From positions 291,725,765-291,789,764 of the forward strand of contig NC_133620.1 in the NCBI RefSeq assembly GCF_048593235.1: a stretch of DNA of 64,000 bases, in the 5' to 3' direction. How positions within the stretch are numbered: position 1 is the first letter of the stretch; each line of letters opens with the position of its first letter. This stretch comes from Sminthopsis crassicaudata (Eukaryota). Positions 42,947 through 63,337 of this stretch are shown one piece after another. A program made the position numbers and the translations under genes. The notes under the pieces are model-generated. The model was not told the origin of the DNA and made no database searches. It worked only from the letters and a program-made list of their open reading frames with translations.

Positions 42947-44459
42947 TCGTAACTATATCATATAATTGAAGTTATTCTGCTTTGTTTCTCCTGTATACAT
43001 GCATGGTAAACTCCATAATTTATTTTATTTATTTACAGTTTTCCATTGAATAAGTATATGGAGTTTTACTGAAAGCCAAGGTGTATAAGAACCCCCCAAA
43101 ACTTGAGAACGCCTACTCTGAACTGTAGATTCAACAGGTGAAACCAAGATTCAATCACTATCTTCCTCTCCTCTTCTCAGTAAGTAAGTCAGAGCAACAA
43201 CTAAACTTTTCCAAGGAGCAAGAACAGGAGAGAGGTAAAGTTTTACTTTTTTGTATGTTTCTTCTTTTCTAGAAGTCTTCAGGAGATAAAGAAAGTTGAT
43301 GTTACATTTTTCTTATCCTACCACAAACCCCCAGTTTGTTTCTCTGTTGCAGAAAAAAAAAAAAAGGGGGAAAGAGATATGAGAGAGTTGACTGGAAAGT
43401 GAGGCAGCAGGGTGGATATTATGGCTTACGAGACTGGGTTTAACTGGGTTTAACACTGGAAAGTAGCCAACTGTTAATCAACCTTTAAAGTCCTAGGAGG
43501 AAAGGGATAAAATGTTCCCTTTAGTCTAAATGTTTAAGAAAATGACCATAACATCTAATCCTTGGACCCACAATTACTCTAGGATGGTCACTGTCAGGAG
43601 ATATGGAGACAAATAGAGTGACTCACACAAAGAATACTCATGGGAAATGGAGAGTTGTGTAGCTAATACCCTTTCTGGAAATTGTGGTTTGGACATTTCT
43701 TTCTAGGAAAATAAAGTGAAGAGTGTGTGTGTGTGTCTCGGGTGAATTTATGAATAAGACTGCTGAATTTTTGCTCCCTGAAGCAAATTCTCTTTGTGGC
43801 CTGAATTCATTCATCCAAAAGGAAAATGACAATTCTCTCTAGCTATGTAATGCCATATTGCCAGATCCTTTTGATTTCTTTCATGACTCATTTTTAAGAA
43901 GATAAGGCAATGGGGGATGTGTCCATATTTAGGTTTTCATTTTTTAATATTTTTATTAGTTTCTATTTCTCACTGACCTTCATTCCTTTTCTTAGTCCTC
44001 TTACTCTTCTGTGGGTCCCCCTCCTTTCCTTGGTCCTATTTTTCTTTTTGTTTATTAGTCTCTTTTTTCTCTGTCTTTAATTATTACCTCATTCCTTCAG
44101 CAGTTTGCTCCATACCAAAGAATTGAAAGTCAGAGAACAACTTTATCTAGTCTTCTATAGCTTAAGACTAAATCTACAGATGAATTAAGGGAGTTTTCTG
44201 AAGCTAGAAGGTATCTTGGCTAAGGAATGGTCAGAATCAGGAGTTTCCTAAGACAGACTTCAAGCCAGAAGATTTAGCATTTCCTGACTCAGGCCCCTAA
44301 AAAACAGGGAGCAAAGAATCCTATTACATCAGATCCATTACCATGCAATAGAATTTCAGGAATGTATTCTCCCCATCCAAATTCTCACCCAAGGTGGGCT
44401 TTGTATAATTCTCCAGAAGGTTTTGGTTTTTCCTTCTCCCAATTTAAATTGTACTAGCA

Positions 44460-46256
44460 CTAGGGCCGTTTGCAGGAGCCATGTTGCTCGATTCCCCCGT
44501 TTCTTTTATCTTCATGCTCTGGATGAATTTGGATAGGGCAACTACATCTTCCTGGGATCCATGAGTCTCCTTCTGTGGAAATACAAAGAAAACCTCGACC
44601 CCGAGTTATTACCTTAACAGGGCCCCTCCACTTCCCATTAACATCCTTCCACATCACATATTGTGGGACGGGCCAGGCTACAGAGCTGGCCCCTTAACCT
44701 TTTGTGTTCCTCTTTGTTTGAGGAGGAATGATGTAGTGAAGAAAAAATTAAGTCAGCTGGGGTATGGGATATGTTATTCAATGTGAAGTAATTAATGGTT
44801 TATAGTGATTGAGTAAGTCTGTCCTTGGGGGATTTCTCCTCCCCCCCCCTTTTGTTTTTCATTGACTTTCAAAGTTTTATTCTTACCTTCTACTTCTGAT
44901 TTTGATAAGCAAATTTTTATAATATTATACAAAGAGAGGGTGATGTAAACTGTGTCCCCTTTAATCTTTGGGGGAAGGGTGGTCCTGAGTCTCAAATCCT
45001 CCAGGTCTCTGGGAAGGACTCCACCCTTTTTGTTTTTAGGGAAACTCCCAGATGGTAATCTCTTTTTCAATTGGTCAACTTGGCCAGAGGCATGATCACT
45101 AACCTCAATTGAAAGGTCCCCCAGCTCCAGGCCAAAACAACCCCCATTTAAAGGAAGGCCTGTCAATCCACCTCTGCTAATTCCTAATTAGGAATGCCCA
45201 CTGAGTTGCTTCTCAATGTAAACCCATCTTTGCAAAAATCCTAAACGGAATTTGCCCGCTAAAAAAGCTATTTTCTTAGTGTAATTGGGGTTTGCGAATT
45301 TCTTCGTAAAGCCTGTGCAATCAGCCAGGGAATGCCATTGCTTGTCAGGAGATTTCTCAACCCTCATTTCACACACCTCAACAAGGGTATCAGCAGAGAC
45401 TGCCTGAGGACCTTTTTCTTCACATGCTTTGTATAAAATTTCTTTGGAGACTTCCCATTCACTGATAGTGATTTTGGGGCCACAGGGGCACCAGGAGCAT
45501 TGTTGTAAACATCCTGTAGAAATGCTCTTATTTTTCTTAATCCTTACTGGCTATTTTAACATGATTAACTGTAAAAATTTAAGATCTTTCCCTTCATCTT
45601 TCAATCCTTTAACTATTTGCTCTCCCATTGTTATACATCTTCTTTTGCCCTGAAAAATGAAAGTAAAAGTGAGCAGGGCTGATGAGCAGCCCTACTGGAG
45701 CTTTCCCCTTACTTTTACTGAGGCCTTTTGTCCTCCAGCTACCCAGGGGGTACCAATCACTATAATACCATCTTCAGTATCATTCTCCTTCAGGTCTCTG
45801 CTTCCCTTGTGGGCTGCTTGACACTATCAATCTCTGTTATGACAGGACCAGGGCCCCATATTGGGAGCCATTTGTTGTGAGCAGCACAACATAAGTCATT
45901 TATGTTATTTAGTGGCAGTTGAAAATAAGGAAACAGAGTTGTTGATGATTCAACAGAGACTTTTAGTAAGAGAAATCATGCTGGATATATATTTTAAAAC
46001 CATAGGTTATGATGAAAAGAATTGCTCTGTAACCAATCCTGATTTCTGTTTTCTATGATCGAATTCTCTGAAGCATGTTGTTATTTTCTAGAGACTCAAT
46101 CTTGTGTAAGGTTCACAATGCCCTAGTAAATGTGCCAAGACTTTATGTTTTCTTATGATTTCAAGATTAAATGCACCCTTGATTAATCTTAGGAGGGGAA
46201 CATTCCAGTTACTGAATCTCTAGCTTCCTGGTAGTTCTCTAGTATCAGTGCACACA
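44460..46256 (-). mobile_element. Collapsed class II ERV: 5' LTR (~45873-46256), PBS-Lys1,2, gag matrix, foreign LTR, integrase C-terminus
   Basis: PBS TGGCTCCCAATATGGGGC (45853-45870) after ...CAACA AA; MA-like MGEQIVKG...QCSWCP...EWEVSKEILYKA; IN tail MWKDVNGKWRGPVKVITRGRGFLCIS. Confidence 0.8.
44661..45373 (+). mobile_element. LTR lying between the gag MA and IN remnants
   Basis: TG start at 44661; right terminus matches the 30253 LTR in opposite orientation. Confidence 0.65.
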
Positions 46257-46275
46257 AGTCCTTTCTTCTAATCTT

Positions 46276-46317
<42 letters not shown>

Positions 46318-46692
46318 AATTCATTTGGGGTTATGACTCACCTAGAGTCACACACCTAGGAAATGATAAGTGCTGGATTTGAAATGAAGTCCTCCTGTTT
46401 CCAGGGTTAGTGCACCATCTAGCTGCCCCCACACATTATCCTTTCTTTAATAGCAATTCTATCAGAAATTTCTTTTGCATGTGTTATTTTCTCCCCTTTC
46501 CATTCCTCTATCAAAAAGCATTGCCTTTGATCATTTTAGATTAGTAATAATTCCATCAAAGTACTTGAGTTTCATTGTCCTCCCTCCTCTATGAGTTATT
46601 CTTACAATTCAAATTTATATAGTGCTTTAAAGTTCTCAATGTGTTTGACTTACACTGACCTTGAAAGATAAGAACTACAGGTATTACTATCC

Positions 46693-49600
46693 TGTAATGT
46701 TCTTCTCTAAAATATATTGTTCAGGGGGCAGCTAGGTGGCGCAGTGGATAGAGCACCAGCCATGAATTCAGGAGGACCGGAGTTCAAACCCGAGTCTCAG
46801 ACACTTAACACTTCCTAGCTGTGTGACCCTGGGCAAGTCACTTAACCCCAGCCTAAGGAAAAAAAAAAATTAAAAAAAAATAAATATATTGTTTTCTGGG
46901 AGCAGGTTTCTTGGGGGGCTTCTGGGAGCAGCCTTTGTTTCAGTTCAAAGTAATAATCACCTCAAATGCAGCCAGGAGTTAAAGTCCAAATCCATTACTG
47001 TCTCTTTCCAAATCTTATCTCCTTCACTTGGGACTCGGCTAGTTTTCTGGAGGACTTCCAGATCTTGGTTTCACACACAGGACAGTGTTCTCCACTTCTC
47101 TGTCTTCCTATGTTCTTCCCAACTTGTGAATCTCCACAAATAAATCCTGGCTCTGAATCTCCCGAAGTGCATCCTGGTTGAGGCTCCTAGCTTATATATG
47201 TTCTCTTAAAATTATGAATCTTGCAGAACTCTAGTAAATACTAAGTACATAATCATTGCCTCTATCAATTCCACTGACTTAGCAATCAGTAAGAATCCTA
47301 ATATCTTCCACTTTCTTTTGATTTAGAACATAGGTGGCCATGACCTCCCTGACTTCTCAAGAAGGTGAGAACCCCAAAAAGAAGGTGATCACTCCTTCCC
47401 TGACTGCTCAAAAAAGGAGTGAAAACACCATAAAAGGAGGTGATCATGCCCTCCCTGACTTCTCAGGAAGGGAGATGAAAACACCAAAAGAAATGGGAAA
47501 TCAAATCAGATTAGCGGGTTTCTGAAGGGGCTCACTCCTAAAACAGGTATACATAAATCCATCAATATGGGGGGTATTACACATAATTATAGAAATTACA
47601 TAAGCACATAGTAACATAACACAGGCTAGTCGTGCTGTAACAAATAACATGAATCAACATGAGGAATTATACAGGTCCATAGGTCCTAGAAATAGTCCAA
47701 AAGGAATCTATTGTCCATTAGTTCATGTGCCAGGAATCCATTAATTCCTGCAAGTTTTGAAGTCCTGCAATAGTCTCATCTTATGTTAGGGAATCCAATG
47801 ATTCCTGATGGTTTTCAAGTCCTGAAACAATCTCATTATCAGTCATGCTCTTTCAGCGTCAAATGTTTCTTAGATCTTCTCCTTTGTTTTGTTTCTCTTT
47901 TCCTGTCTCTCTCCAGGTGCTTGTTGCCACCCATCTGTTTCCTTCTCAATCTGTAGGAATATAAGCAAACCCTCTCTCCCAAGCGTTAACCTATCTAGTC
48001 CCTTCTCTTTACCACTTTCTAAATCTCTCCTCATCATCTGGCAATTACATTGGAGCTGTTTGCACTGGACACTGCCCTTCTGTTGGGTTAAAAAGCCTGT
48101 ATTCTCCCCAATTGTAATCCCTTTCTGCTCTCTGATTACTTTTTGGCTGATAGATCAGGTAATCCATTTCTGCCATGTGATTGCTTTTCAGCTGATAGAT
48201 CACATCAGAATCCTGAACTTCTTTGGGTGAAAAGTCAGCTGCCATTATGCCCCACCTGTCTTAGGGCTGGGCCCTGCCTCTCATTTCCCTGGGTCAATCT
48301 ACATACTGAGGCCCAGTGGAAGCCCTTGTGGCATTTTGGACATAGGGTTTTGGGTTTTATTCTCTTACCCTGTCCTCTCACTCCATCTCTTTGCCCACAC
48401 TGAGCTCTTAGATGTCCAACTTTTCCACATTGAAAACACTAACAAGTTTCTCTAGAAGTCCCTTGCCAAGAGGGACCCTGTCTTCCCATGTTCATCATAG
48501 TCTGCGTGTAATAAGCATTTGTGCCCACTGTGGCACAGCGTCTTATGATCTCCTCTAAAGGAACATCTTTATGTAGTCCCCATATAATTCTTCTGCAAAC
48601 CTCATTAGCATTTTTCTTAGCCAGTTGTCTGGTCATTATTTCTATAGCTGCAATGGTTCTTGTGACAGCTGTTTGCAGACGTACCGCAAAATTCACAAAG
48701 GGTTCATTGGGATCTTGCTCTATTTTTGTGAAGGCTTCCCCTTGACCTTTTTGTCCATGGAGGGAACCCCAAGCTTTTTGTTGCAGCAGTGGCAATCTGT
48801 TCATAAGCTGTTGTGAGGTAATTCATCTGTTCTGAATTCTCTCCATACTGGTCTTTATCTGCTAGTTGGTCAAAAGTGACTTGTACATTAACTCCTGTTT
48901 GCCTATTGGGTCTGACTTGAATCCTGCATAATTCATGATACTCCGAAAGCCACAACAAGTTTTGACCTTGCTATGGATTTCCAGTTACTAGGGGTTAAGA
49001 TTTCATAAGCCAAATTATCTAGTAACATTTTAACATAAGACGATGTAGCCCCATAAAGAGTGCAACTTTTTTTCAAATTCTTAATTTTTTCTAGATCAAA
49101 GGGAGTGCATCTTCTCCTTTGTTGACTTGAAAGGACAAGCTCTTCAATCACAGGGTATGCATCTATAAAATCACTTATATCCTCTCCTTCATTTTTTGCC
49201 TTAACTAAGGCTTTTTCTTTTTTTTTTTTTTTCTTTTTCTGAGGCTGGGGTTAAGTGACTTATCCAGAGCCACACAGCTAGGAAGTGTTAAGTGTCTGAA
49301 ACCAGATTTGAACTTGGGTCCTCCTGAATTCAGGGATGGTGCTCTATCCACTGTGCCACCTAGCTGCCCCAAACTAATGCTTTTTCTAATTTTGTCATAG
49401 GCTGCTTAACAGGCAATTCTGTTTGTGTCACTGCCTCTTCCCCTCCTCCTTCTTCCTCCACCCATGAAGGGTTAATTGAAGGAGGTAAGTCAGGGGGTTG
49501 GGAAATGCTCCTGTTGTGAAGTGCCACACTCAGAATTGTACTTAACTCCATTCTTAACTGATTCTTCATCCTTTTCACCTACTTTATTTGGCACCTTTAC

Positions 49601-50330
49601 CTCCTGCTCTTTCTTCTTTTTTCTTATTTTTTAAAGCCAGTTGTATTAAATTATATGTATAAAGTATATTTTTGGAAATTGAGTTTGGATTGGAATTGTA
49701 ATATTCACCTAGTTGCTCTCCTACTAATTTCTACTCATCTGGATTCAATTCTTTTTCCTTAGAGAACCAAGGAGATGTGTACTGTACAGTCTCTAAAAGT
49801 TCAGTGATCTGCTCCCAAATTATAATCAAACCTTGGCTTTTCATAAGTCTGAAAATGCTCTCTAAACATTTTCCTTGAATTGAAAAAGATGGCTGTTTCT
49901 AAACATCTGTCCCATTTTAGCTGAAATTCTATCTTAGCTCTTTAACAAAGTTACTCACCCTAATTTCTGGGTCATAGATGAAGGTTCTTGGTCCAACATT
50001 CAGGTACCAAAATGTAATATTCTCTTCTCTAAAATATATTGTTTTCTGGGAGCAAGTTTCTTGGGGGGCTTCTGGGAGCAACCTTAGTTTCAGCTCAAAG
50101 TAGTAATCACCTCAAATGCAGCCAGGAGTTAAAGTCCAAATCCTTTATTGTCTCCTTCAAAATCTCATCTCCTTCACTTGGGGCTTGGCTAGTTTTCTGG
50201 AGGCCTTCCGGATCTTGGTTTCAATGTTCTCCACAAGACAGCCTGCCACCACTTCTCTGTCTTCCTATGTTCTTCCCGACTTGTGAATCTCCTCAAATGA
50301 ATCCTGGCTCTGAATCTCCTAAAGTGCATC
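46693..50330 (-). mobile_element. Older class II ERV, gag retained and pro-pol deleted; 3' LTR 46693-47303, truncated 5' LTR ~50013-50330
   Basis: gag ATG GGA CAG at 49915; MHR IEQDPNEPFVNFAVRLQ; Zn knuckles CFQCGKVGHLRAQC and CPKCHKGFHWASVC; jumps to IN tail (RLFNPTEGQCPV); decayed PBS TGGTACCTGAATGTTGGAC at ~49991-50009; SINEs inserted at 46722-46880 (TSD AAATATATTGTT) and 49215-49370. Confidence 0.9.
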
Positions 50331-50402
50331 CCAATCTAGAACACTCAAACAGCATCAAGTAGTCTTTGCTGATAGTTAGGAGCCTTTGAGGAAAAAAAGA
50401 GG

Positions 50403-51021
50403 TGTCAGAATGATGAGTTCTAGATTTGGGGTACCCAAATGAAAATGAGGTCTAGTGGCAGATTCAGGGTTCAGGGAGTCAAATAGAGTCCCTCTGAAAC
50501 CCCTTTTGATTCGGTACAAGGATATGGAGTTAAATGAGGGTTTAGTGGCAGTGTAAGAGTCCCCTATAAAGGAATTTACAGACCTGAAAACCTAGATTAA
50601 TAAAAATGGTTTATTATGGGGTTTGGAAATAAGGTTAAAGTCCAGTTAGTAAGAGGTGTTAGATAAAGAGAAGAGGGCATCAGAAACAGTGTTCCAGTGG
50701 GTAAAGAGTCCGTGCTGGCATGGTGCTGGCATGTTTCGACCCTCTTCAAAGAGAGGCCTCCAGTCTGGCTCTTTATATAATAGGGGGTTTTGGCTACAAG
50801 CTGAAGGGGGTTCGTAGGTGGAGTCCCAGGTTGACTCCTGGCTGGGTTTCAGCCAGGGTTAGAATTTGGATTGAATTCAATGGGTTTCAGGACTGAGCCA
50901 TCCCCACCCAGATAATAAAGATGAAACTGTTTGTGCTTGGAGTGGAGTCCCCTCACTGAGGCAAAGTCAAAGAAGGTTTTCTCCTTTAAGGATTTTTCAG
51001 AGTTTTGGAGTTTCTTCTTCA
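50403..51021 (-). mobile_element. Solo LTR in LY6G6F pseudogene intron 2
   Basis: TG...CA ends; TTTATT (~50611) and TTTATATA (~50773) on + give poly(A) and TATA signals on minus; TSD not confirmed. Confidence 0.6.
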
Positions 51022-51834
51022 AGAATATTATCCATGTTCACCAAACCCTTGCAGCCACCATGAATAATTGAGACAGTCACTTTTGTCTAGCTTCTTTCAT
51101 CCTCAGAGCCCATTGTTCTCAGTAAAATGGATGGTTGTGATGATTGAAGAACCTCTCATATGGCTCCCATAATCACATACTCTCTCTCTCTCTCTATCCT
51201 CTTCTTAGAGCTCTCCCCATTTGCTTTAATATTCCTTTGACTCCCTGGATCCCCTCCCTTCTCCCTATCCCCAAGAAATTCCATAAACCCCCTCTCACCT
51301 CTGATCACAGAAAGACCATTTACCCTCCAGTTCTAGTACTTGACATAATTGCCAAGCACAGTGGACCAGTCTCATCCTGCATCCTCCTCCTGAGCCTCTT
51401 CTAGCCAGAGAGAATTATTTCACAGCAAAGTCAGCCTGAATTTCCTTAAGATCTTCCTAGTCTTAGGAACATTGGTGGTCATGGGAAATCAGACTGATGC
51501 AAATAGTGTTCCCATCGAACTTTTGGGGAGGATGGAAGGAAAACTGAGGAGCTCTCCTCTGAGAGAGACCCACCCCAGGGATAAGTAGTTTCATTCTGTT
51601 ATCTTGGTGAGGACTGGCAACATCCTCTATTAATTAACTACACCCACTATTGAGCAGCTATACCCTCTATGGAATTGAAAATTAGTCCTGGACCACTCCT
51701 AGTAGCTTATTCAATTGAATAAATTAAAGACATACTTAAGGTAAATACATTAGTATGATGATTTCTGCTATTTACTACTCTGTTTTGACAAGTACTTTGG
51801 TATTGACAAACATCACAACTATTCTGTTGGTATT

Positions 51835-51972
51835 TTTTTCCTGAGGCTGGGGTTAAGTGACTTGCCCAGGGTCACATAGCTAGGAAGTGTTAAGTGTCTG
51901 AGACCAGATTTGAACTCCGGGTCCTCCTGAATTCAAGGCTGTGCTCTATCCACTGTGCCACCTAGCTGCCCC
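51835..51972 (-). mobile_element. WSINE1-type SINE in LY6G6F pseudogene intron 1
   Basis: 16-bp TSD CTATTCTGTTGGTATT. Confidence 0.9.
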
Positions 51973-53084
51973 CTATTCTGTTGGTATTGATGAACACTCT
52001 CCCTATCTGTGCAGAAAGAGGGTCAGTGATAAGTTATTCCAGGAAGAGGTAACAGACCCCTCTCTAACTTTACCTGACTGATTCCTTTCTTCATTTCTTC
52101 TAAGTGGGTTTTGTCATGTTCTTGGTTGTGCTAGGTGGCACAGTGAATAGACCTAAGTACAAATGTAGCCTTAGATAATAACTACTTGTGTATCTCTGGA
52201 TAAGTCATTTAATCTGTTTTGTCTCAGTTTCCTGATCTGTAAAATAGGGATAATAATTATATTCCAGCATTGTTGTAAGGTAAATTAAATATTAATTGTA
52301 AAGTGCTACATAGGATAGTGCTTGCCATGTAATAAGCATTATATAAATTTTAGTATTATTAATGTTACTTGTGGGAAGGTACTCTGCCTCAAGCTGTAAA
52401 ATAGAATCGGGAAGGAGAATGGAAAGAAAGTTTTTTTTTAATAGGAAGGAAGACATAGTGGGGGATATAACCAAGCTCTAGTTGGAAAGGGAGAAATTCA
52501 TTTGCTGTTATGGTGTCTCATCCCTCAACATTCAGGCCACCCTTCCTTCTCTACCCCTCATCTAGAGAAAAGTAAAAAACCCCTAATCCTGAGAACATTT
52601 TTAACTTTTTAAGTCCACCTGCTACTATTTGCCTGGTGACATCAGAGGGATGAATGGGAGGCAGGAAAAACAATAAGTCAAAGCATATGTAAACCATGGG
52701 TGTATATATACAAGAATGCTTTCATTGGGAGATGGGTGTCCTAAGAAGGAAATGGGGTCAAGATAACAGACCATAGTTCCATGGCTGTGGATGACTTGGG
52801 GCTCTGGATAATATAGTCCCCTAATGGGGATGAGAATACCAGCAATAATAAACCAACAACTAGTTTGTCCAATGGAGATAAGAGAATAGTATCCTATCTG
52901 GTATGTGCCTTCAGCCCTATGTCGTCCCCAGGGCTATCATATATGAAGAGATCCATTGACCATTTCCTGTAACCGCCAAAAGATTGTAGTGGATAGAACA
53001 TTATCCTGTATTTAAAGGCTTTCAAGCCTGTGCATAGTTTTTGGACTAAGAGCATAAAATTATTTTGACTATGTAAAGTATTTG

Positions 53085-60329: not shown

Positions 60330-60720
60330 AGCCCCAAGCCTAAACCCAGGCCGCCCAGTCCAGTCTTCTTCAATCCTCCCTCCCCACCTGTCAGCCCTCC
60401 AGGAAGGACCAAGCAGGGCCAAATGCTTCCCCCGACGGATTTAAGTCCGGACTAAGAGTTTCTGGAGGATGCCGGCACTGTACGTGATGACGTAAGGAAT
60501 CACGCATCACCCAAGAGGCTAGGGAGAAGGCGGGGCGACTTGGCTGGGGGGGGGGTGGGGGGGAATTTGCCGCTGGAGGAGCCGCGGCTGGAACCGGGGT
60601 GATGGCGAAGCTGCTAAGCTGCGTCTTAGGCCCCCGGCTCTACCGGATCTATCGAGAGAGGGACTCAGGAAGAACCCAATCCAGCGTTCCCGGGACACCG
60701 GCTGCCATTGCCACCTCCCC
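60330..60720 (+). promoter_or_regulatory. ABHD16A CpG-island promoter
   Basis: CpG-rich; CRE-like TGACGTAA at ~60487; GC box GGCGGGGC at ~60530. Confidence 0.6.
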
Positions 60721-63337
60721 GACCGAGTCCTGGGTGAGTCTTGTTCTCCCTCTCCCCCAGCTGGAGTCATGGTATGGTCCAAACCCGTTGCTACTTTAGC
60801 TCCCCGGAAGCACCCATAATTGGAATTAGGGGGAGCGTGTTAGTCTGCCGATTTCCCCACAAATACTGACCATCTGGATCTTTCCGGTGCCATTTAAGTG
60901 CTTGTGGAGGGAGCGTTTTTCCTTTCCCTCCATCTGTCTGTTTACACCTTCCTAATTTCTCTTTTATCTCGTTTGCTTTTTTTAACCTTACTCCCCTCTC
61001 CGCCCCCCTCCCCGGTTCAGCACTCCACCCTACTCGCGCGGGTTCTCCTGGTTCCTGCCGAAGCGCAGATGCTATTGGAAAGGGTGTGTTCTGACGGTGT
61101 TTGCCATTAAACTCCCTGCGTCTCAGTTCGAACTGTCGCTTTGTCCTTTTCTCTCCAGGTGTTTCACCTATGTTTGGCTCTTCATTTCCTTCTCGTAACG
61201 ACTTCCCACCTACTTAGGCGCTGGTCCCCCGCCCCCAGAGTGGTGGTTGCCCCCTCCCACTCTGCCAGACCTGGAGAGCCCCACGAGGCAACTCTATTTT
61301 TAGAAGCAGGAGACATTTTATATTGTGTCCACTCATTGTGTCCACTGCCCCAGCCGCCCCGTTCTCTTTTTCTAATTTCTGCCATCTCTTCAGGCTTCCC
61401 CAGTTTGTTCTTCATAAAAGACTCCTTCCTTCTCCTGGGTCTCCCTCCCCCACCGTGTTTCATCCATCTCCAGAGGGGAGTTGCGAAAAAGGGGACAAAA
61501 GTCATTCATGGCTTTCTTCCCTGCTCTGGTGGTTTGGATCTTCCTTGGAGTAAGAGTGGGAGCGATGGAGTGGGGAGCCTGAGGTGGGCCTGTCCGGGAC
61601 AGAGGAGACCCGAATCTAGAGAGGTCCGAACGAGGTCCAGGCACCTACAGGCGGGGGGTGCTTTCAGGGGAGGCTCCAACTGACTGCACAGGGCTAGGGT
61701 GTTTTTTTTTCTTTTTTCCAGGAGTCTTATTATCAGCCCAGGGCCCTAGAGAAGCACGCTGACAGCATCCTGGCCTTGGTGAGTTGGTCCTCTGCACTCT
61801 TCCCTCCCCAGACTTGTTTATGGCCCCTTCCCAGTGCAGAAGACTGATTAGGTTCTGAGCACGGGCTTTGAGCCCCAGCTGAGGAATTCTTTTCTCCCGG
61901 CTGTTAAGCCATACATCTTCCTCTGAGACTGTACAGGGGGTGAGGAAAACATGTTTACTCCCAGTTGGGACCTTCCCCGGGTACTAACTGCAAATACTAC
62001 ATCTCCTCAAGCAACAGGCTTTCTTTGCTTTGGTGAGAGCTCTTCTCTCCACTGGAGTTTTCATGTCAACATTTTTTCATACTGTCATTTGGGGACCAGA
62101 ACATACCAAGTAGCAATGATGTAAAACATTCAGACAAATTGTATAGGAAGAAAATGCCTTTTAAGTTTGAAAAGATCATTTTTTTTTTTTTTTTAGATCT
62201 GTACCTGAGGAAGTTTCTTTTTGTATCAATATTCATTAGCAGTATTGATCATGACAGATGTATGATACAGTGGATAAAGGGCTGAGCTTTAAATCAGGAA
62301 GACTTGAATTAAAATCTATCCTTAGGCATTCCTTAAAGGGTGTGACAAGTCACTCAACCCTTTTCTGCCTTAGTTTCCCCATCTATAAAATGGGAAAAAT
62401 AATGGCACCCATCTTCAAGAATCTTGTGCAGATCCAATAGGATGATATAATTAATTAGGCTTCCTAGAAAAGCTAAGAAGAAAGCACTGTGCAAAGTGAG
62501 TTCAATCCTAGAAATTTACTACTTATGTAACCTGAGCAAAGAAAACAAATTAATTGTCGGACATACAGATCTTATTCATATTGAGGCTGGCTAACTTGGG
62601 GAAAAATGCATTCCCCCCCTATTTTTCCCCCACCCCTCCAATGCATTTCTCTACTGCCTTTTCTCCCATGTATATCTTAATTTTCCTTTCCTCTTACCCT
62701 TTGACTTCCCTGTTTGATAATTTGCAAGACACTTCCAGTCTTCTTATCACCATTATTAATCACCCTTGGAAGAGTGAATTTTGGCAGAATGGAACATGCT
62801 TTCCTTAAACTCCTCCTCCCTTTAATATGGTTGTTCCAAATTACTTTTCATGCCACTTTGGAATGCTTGACTTTCTCCAGATTGGTCAGAATCCAGTGTT
62901 GGAAATGGGGGAGCATTCAAAGCAAAAGGAAAAACCTGACTGTCTATTTGTCCATTTTCCTACCACAGGCCTCAGTTCTCTGGTCCATCTCTTATTATTC
63001 CTCCCCCTTGGCTTTCTTCTACTTGTACAGAAAAGGTCAGTGTGGAGTTAAATTACTGGGTTGGGTTTTGGATAGTACAAATTTTGATTAAAAAAGAGAA
63101 TCTTGTCTCAGGAGAAGGGTTCCTCTTGTGTTAGTAGGTATAGCAAATGCTCCCCAGAAAGACCAAGCAAATGCCCCAAATTAGGCTTTGAATAGAGGGG
63201 AAGAGCAACAGATGAAGGAAGAGCTTGAACTCAGCTTTTTCTCTTTTCAGGTTACTTGTGTATGTCAAAGGTGGTACCCTTCTCTCATTATGCAGGGACA
63301 TTGCTACTGCTTCTAGCAGGTGTGGCCTGTCTTCGAG
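60602..63337 (+). CDS. ABHD16A: Phosphatidylserine lipase ABHD16A (BAT5), first four coding exons; gene continues beyond the window
   Basis: Exons 60602-60733 (MAKLLSCVLGPRLYRIYRERDS...SW), 61722-61778 (ESYYQPRALEKHADSILAL), 62969-63035 (ASVLWSISYYSSPLAFFYLYRK), 63251-63337 (GYLCMSKVVPFSHYAGTLLLLLAGVACLR); canonical splice sites. Confidence 0.96.
62270..62450 (+). mobile_element. MIR-type SINE in ABHD16A intron
   Basis: CORE-SINE phrases (CCCCATCTATAAAATGGG). Confidence 0.6.

Follow-up and report, generated by a model that had tools for sequence, protein, structure and literature searches.

The 64,000 nucleotides considered here (the window), which come from contig NC_133620.1 of Sminthopsis crassicaudata, are a marsupial class III segment of the major histocompatibility complex (MHC), reversed relative to the usual mammalian map. 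Within it we have concentrated on only one gene, or rather on what is left of one: LY6G6F, the gene for the immunoglobulin (Ig) superfamily receptor G6f, whose relic occupies 50332-52697 on the minus strand, between exon 1 of ABHD16A and an intact MPIG6B, the gene for G6b-B. Can what remains at this place still encode a receptor? We are highly confident that it can not, and that the stretch is the remnant of the orthologous LY6G6F gene. A first-pass annotation, made from the letters of the window, had called a pseudogene here, and the two boundaries that it chose turn out to be meaningful ones: 52697 is the start of the conserved exon 1 ATG, and 50330 is the point at which a long terminal repeat (LTR) cuts into exon 3.

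The intact genes with which the relic can be compared were reached by a somewhat winding route: from the G6b Ig-V stretch to marsupial and eutherian G6b proteins, from these to the sugar glider and Tasmanian devil loci, from there to LY6G6D, and so to a leopard locus (L005), which carries the complete series ABHD16A-LY6G6F-LY6G6E-D-C-G6B. In the leopard, exon 2, intron 2, and exon 3 of LY6G6F form one open frame of 262 codons (L005 3197-3982), the short intron being in frame and free of stops. With these 262 codons as the query, 134 LY6G6F proteins were found, from all eutherian orders sampled and from two marsupials. Intact marsupial LY6G6F is represented by Gracilinanus agilis (P0138, 297 aa) and by the wombat, Vombatus ursinus (P0139, 303 aa). 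Both proteins retain the signal peptide, both Ig cysteines, the YWC motif, a transmembrane segment, and the YxN tail, and both lie above the V-set threshold; the ratio of nonsynonymous to synonymous substitution (dN/dS) between them is 0.32 over the ectodomain exons, summed exon by exon.

Gene order and flanking DNA place the relic in the slot that the gene held ancestrally, with the divergent ABHD16A on one side and LY6G6D/C-MPIG6B on the other, the leopard locus serving as the reference for that order. The first coding exon of ABHD16A (60608-60784, plus strand), found by tblastn with the corresponding piece of leopard exon 1 (E 3e-20, 66% identity), stands head-to-head with the relic, an arrangement that is the same in other mammals. 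By blastn, the blocks shared by the window and the wombat LY6G6F locus (L007) are colinear, and the flank and introns are also colinear with the Gracilinanus locus (L008). The 5′ flank and exon 1 (window 52527-53046) match L007 10169-9654 at E 4e-115; intron 1 as far as the acceptor of exon 2 (52005-52503) matches 11173-10625; the 3′ half of exon 2 with intron 2 (51025-51485) matches 11778-11315; the start of exon 3 (50353-50402) matches 11844-11796; part of intron 3 (46437-46691, minus strand) matches 12725-12318; and sequence downstream of LY6G6F (43098-44098) matches 15827-14820. Introns 1 and 2 align with both wombat and Gracilinanus, so the relic is not a processed copy.

We scored lesions against the intact wombat and Gracilinanus genes, comparing the exons singly, and the damage begins at the very start of the gene. 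Exon 1, which encoded the signal peptide (52633-52697, minus strand, from a three-way alignment with wombat and Gracilinanus), keeps its ATG at 52697-52695. Its coding part is longer by one nucleotide than that of the intact marsupials (65 nt vs. 64 nt), owing to a +1 insertion near 52661 that shifts the frame, and its donor, at 52632-52631, reads GC, not GT.

Exon 2, the Ig-V exon (51299-52006, minus strand), is alignable only over 51475-51299, its last 177 nt, where the alignment to the intact marsupials is free of gaps. That the Ig-V exon is recognizable, as the first-pass annotation had said, is borne out at the protein level, on the minus strand: by tblastn, residues 77-134 of Gracilinanus LY6G6F are 64% identical to the translation of window 51464-51291 (E 7e-18), wombat LY6G6F matches at E 2e-18, and leopard exon 2 matches at E 3e-13. 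In-frame stops had been reported for the 3′ half of the exon, three of them, and on alignment that number is exact: TGA at 51422-51420, TGA at 51374-51372 (from CGA/CGG), and TAG at 51335-51333 (from CAG). The DAGRYWC motif can still be recognized, now as DAG-stop-D-W-S, with Tyr changed to Asp at 51371-51369 and with the reported change of Cys to Ser (TGT to TCC) at 51365-51363.

Less of the earlier description survives in the 5′ half of this exon. Both splice sites had been thought present, and the donor GT is indeed kept (51298-51297), while the acceptor of the ancestral exon is to be found not near 51588, where there is also an AG, but in the AG at 52008-52007, ∼530 nt upstream of the recognizable part. 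Those ∼530 nt stand in place of ∼150 nt of the wombat exon and include a short interspersed element (SINE) at 51834-51972 on the minus strand, recognized by reading of the sequence, by alignment, and by self-blast, and bordered on each side by one copy of its 15-nt target-site duplication (51819-51833 and 51973-51987). For the ∼150 nt of 5′ exon sequence, local DNA alignment does no better than shuffled sequence and the protein pieces find no match, so the frameshifts that had been claimed in this part of the exon can not be shown. The SINE is 94% identical to copies at 46723-46865 and 2919-3061, the three making up a family whose members are ∼94% identical to each other.

Intron 2 (50384-51298, minus strand) is 914 nt long vs. 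∼312 nt in the wombat, and it contains an insertion of ∼620 nt (50402-51025) that has no blastn match in the wombat, Gracilinanus, devil, or sugar glider loci or in the rest of the window. This insertion holds chance open pieces of 70 and 83 codons. Exon 3 was at first placed by eye inside it, at 50649-50990, a placement that we rejected because the blastn map shows the stretch to be window-specific intron 2 insertion; the 70-aa open piece of that false exon has four library matches, to spurious multidomain proteins, and is uninformative on LY6G6F. The true exon 3, identified by alignment with wombat and Gracilinanus, is a stub (50332-50383, minus strand, acceptor AG at 50385-50384) that reads Gly-Ser-TAA. 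Its stop at codon 3 (50378-50376), already noticed in the first pass, stands where both intact marsupials have CAG; a small indel follows, and after ∼50 nt, the exon is cut by the LTR.

That LTR belongs to a degraded provirus (46882-50331, minus strand), whose two LTRs, at 46882-47174 and 50032-50331, are 9% diverged. Inside it we recognize both the N and the C domain of gag p24 and what is left of a zinc knuckle; a SINE is nested at 49214-49370. The outer flanks of the provirus have no target duplication in common, and ∼450 nt that the wombat has at this point, from the remainder of exon 3 into the beginning of intron 3, are missing alongside it, so a deletion came with the insertion or after it. 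One stretch of the provirus (47551-48100) resembles the pol region of a mini-provirus at 54.6-55.2 kb.

Beyond the provirus, no exon of the gene remains. The rest of exon 3, expected between the stub and the intron 3 remnant at 46437-46691, is absent, and neither it nor exons 4-6 (transmembrane and cytoplasmic) could be matched anywhere in the 64 kb with wombat and Gracilinanus queries, permissive thresholds included; the first pass had also found no such exons. The interval in which exons 4-6 would be expected, including the one for the cytoplasmic YxN (44099-46436, minus strand, bounded by L007 12725 and 14820), is occupied by retroviral fragments instead. Among these fragments are an integrase C-terminal DNA-binding domain (44463-44693, E 6e-9) and a weak gag p10-like match (45191-45550). 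The window therefore offers no unbroken six-exon frame, no transmembrane segment, and no YxN (Grb2-binding) tyrosine of G6f. A Pfam scan of the relic pieces gave no domain match; the LY6G6F Ig family PF28430 (Ig_LY6G6F) appears only in precomputed annotations, and the Pfam copy that we searched misses it even for the intact proteins P0139, P0138, and P0028.

Each surviving exon, then, carries at least one disabling lesion, and there are at least 10 independent lesions of different kinds overall. Several of them (the +1 insertion and the GT to GC donor of exon 1, the exon 2 SINE, the intron 2 insertion, and the provirus that truncates exon 3) had not been described in the first pass.

How long has the gene been in this state? 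We counted a change on the window branch at each site where wombat and Gracilinanus agree and the window differs. In the alignable part of exon 2, 23 of 177 nt changed in this way (0.130/site), distributed 10:4:9 over the codon positions, and in the introns and 5′ flank, 95 of 897 nt did (0.106/site). The exon thus appears to have evolved at the neutral (intron) rate on this branch, which is consistent with neutrality and not proof of it. The two LTRs of the provirus differ by a Kimura two-parameter (K2P) distance of 0.099, close to the K2P of 0.085-0.112 between the window and the devil, which suggests that the insertion is about as old as the split from the devil. Together, the intron-like exon rate and the LTR divergence support the view, put forward in the first pass from the number of lesions, that the loss is old. 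The SINE family to which the exon 2 element belongs is younger than both the LTR pair and the devil split, and given the 94% identity between copies, the element probably landed in a gene that was already dead.

These observations can be arranged into a simple history. LY6G6F would have been functional in the marsupial ancestor and would have been inactivated early on the branch that leads to this species, at about or before the split from the devil lineage. Neutral decay may have followed, within an erosion that took in the LY6G6C-LY6G6D-LY6G6F block more widely, during which the flanking MPIG6B and ABHD16A presumably remained constrained.

Other readings of the same sequence deserve a hearing. 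The relic might persist as a noncoding RNA that is still transcribed, or it might be a regulatory element that it has in common with the promoter region of the divergent ABHD16A, and it is true that exon 1, its ATG, and the 350 nt upstream align with the wombat at 77%. This figure is no better than that of neutral flank, however, and the 5′ flank alone changed on the window branch at 0.095/site, like the introns, with no sign of extra constraint; we regard such a role as unlikely. It is less likely still, and to our minds quite improbable, that some other part of the genome holds an intact LY6G6F duplicate or retrocopy that keeps the function, so that the loss would not be unitary. Nothing positive speaks for a second copy beyond the fact that our view of this genome is 64 kb wide, whereas the relic has kept both its introns and its ancestral position, and the species among the 134 LY6G6F matches carry the gene under single names (with isoforms and read-throughs), with no paralog family to be seen. 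Weakest of all is the idea that the gene is functional and its lesions are assembly or sequencing artefacts or a rare haplotype, which can appeal to their being known from one assembly. It is made extremely improbable by the stops, which number four, by the +1 indel and the lost donor of exon 1, by the SINE with its target duplication, by a provirus with ∼10% LTR divergence, by ∼3.5 deleted exons, and by an intron-like substitution rate in the exon. SINEs, proviruses, and deletions are not what base-calling errors produce, and given the age of the lesions, polymorphism or artefact is a very improbable source of them.

The reading that we prefer, an old loss of LY6G6F at its ancestral locus, has points against it nonetheless. 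The search for a second copy covered the 64-kb window of this genome, and the single-base lesions rest on one assembly. The rate comparison is one of 177 nt, and the wombat branch is itself weakly constrained over the same stretch (0.045 vs. 0.058). The timing relative to the devil comes from divergence values only, the devil loci reaching as far as the equivalent of window ∼42.7 kb.

The neighbors of the lost gene tell two different stories. MPIG6B (26805-28636, minus strand) is intact, as recognized by the Pfam G6B family (E 7.5e-43) and by tblastn with devil G6b (P0022). Its five coding exons, namely signal (28636-28580), Ig-V (28357-27995), transmembrane (27795-27688), cytoplasmic (27256-27044), and the exon for the immunoreceptor tyrosine-based inhibitory and switch motifs (ITIM/ITSM; 26900-26805), are all open and 80-95% identical to devil G6b, so that the proposal of a lineage that lost G6f and kept G6b-B holds.

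LY6G6C and LY6G6D have fared no better than LY6G6F. Their LU-domain exons are present in the wombat, sugar glider, Gracilinanus, and eutherian loci, and no counterpart was found in the window (the stretch concerned is 29000-33300) or, in the devil, over the 10 kb (L003/L004 1-10000) that lie upstream of G6b. A comparison of the translated bat LY6G6C/D region with the window and a scan for the cysteine pattern of LU exons gave no match either, which we attribute to deletion of the LY6G6C/D exons: an interval that measures ∼6.3 kb in the sugar glider (L002 1879-8182) has collapsed in the window, its two sides abutting at 31236/31274. From these comparisons, the lineage seems to have lost the whole LY6G6C-D-F block, and the devil locus likewise lacks C and D. 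There is perhaps an even chance that LY6G6C-LY6G6D-LY6G6F had already been erased in the common ancestor with the Tasmanian devil, possibly in that of all Dasyuromorphia, in which case G6b-B would have done without G6f for tens of millions of years.

The remainder of the window can be described briefly. Reading of the translated open reading frames places MSH5 at 1.7-4.3 kb (minus strand), CLIC1 near 21 kb (plus strand), and DDAH2 at 24.6-27 kb (plus strand). From G6b to ABHD16A the distance is 32 kb, packed with SINEs and retroviral fragments, and the noncoding DNA adjoining G6b is ∼88% identical to that of the Tasmanian devil and ∼75% identical to that of the sugar glider; by these values and the K2P distances, the genome is that of a dasyuromorph-like marsupial, nearest to the devil yet distinct from it. 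Dasyurid genomes are known for heavy retroviral and SINE activity (PMC11334065), and the present case shows what such activity can do to a normally compact class III segment.

Why should one care about a dead gene? G6f is an Ig receptor of megakaryocytes and platelets. It is expressed in platelets, carries a YxN motif, and is phosphorylated downstream of collagen signaling, and its physiological role is unknown (PMC3528668); through YxN it binds GRB2 and GRB7 (PMC4839075, citing de Vet 2003), and the same source lists its cellular function as unknown, with no knockout (PMC4839075). Every eutherian order sampled has LY6G6F, as do three marsupial lineages besides this one, and this lineage would, judging by its genomic sequence, be a natural knockout of a receptor that placental mammals and other marsupials have conserved. 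A long-lived lineage that lacks G6f would mean that the receptor is dispensable in at least one mammalian hemostatic system, and the retention of G6b-B without G6f would mean that G6b-B does not depend on it. For a receptor whose role is unknown, natural null animals would be there for comparison; if the loss of the block holds across dasyurids, the laboratory dunnart and its relatives would be natural G6f-null mammals in which to probe what G6f does in platelets. Among open-access papers, we met with no account of LY6G6F being lost in any marsupial. What we have described is a real, multiply disabled, and old G6f pseudogene at its ancestral locus. It adds a new case to a phenomenon already familiar, and its interest is modest, lying mainly in the natural knockout that it would provide.

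Placed beside the LY6G6F genes of other mammals, the relic is at once familiar and foreign. It shares with them the slot (ABHD16A, LY6G6F, the LY6G6 genes, and MPIG6B), the layout of exons 1-3 with phase-1 junctions, and, in the 3′ half of the Ig-V domain with its DAGRYWC region, an identity of 64%. Unlike them, it has no open frame, neither cysteine of the Ig fold, no transmembrane segment, and no YxN tail, and its second ectodomain exon ends after ∼17 codons. Living relatives of the gene show some variety of their own. MEGT1 is a G6f-G6d read-through of eutherians, and at least one marsupial seems to have such a read-through too: in the sugar glider (Petaurus, L002 1-4378), a gene of 392 aa joins G6f Ig domains (precomputed PF28430) to an LU domain. 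In the hedgehog (L006 1-887), the longest product, of 360 aa, has G6f Ig domains only on record. Each of these two products, the longest annotated at its locus, exceeds the length of G6f by itself. The named nonmammalian counterpart of G6f is the teleost G6f-like (G6fL), a collagen receptor of thrombocytes that has YxN in common with it (PMC3528668) and that differs in having four Ig domains and an ITAM (immunoreceptor tyrosine-based activation motif; PMC3528668), which makes it background on the function of the family and nothing more.

The closest parallels are other losses from the LY6G6 cluster of the MHC class III region, whose members come and go from one lineage of mammals to another, between flanking genes that stay. 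For LY6G6E, a gene of the mouse, no ortholog is listed in human (PMC4839075 Table 3), and LY6G6D was not found in the 2006 map of the opossum MHC (PMC1351924). The loss described here differs from these in that the loser is G6f, an Ig-superfamily member that is present in all eutherian orders sampled, and in that it has gone together with LY6G6C and LY6G6D.

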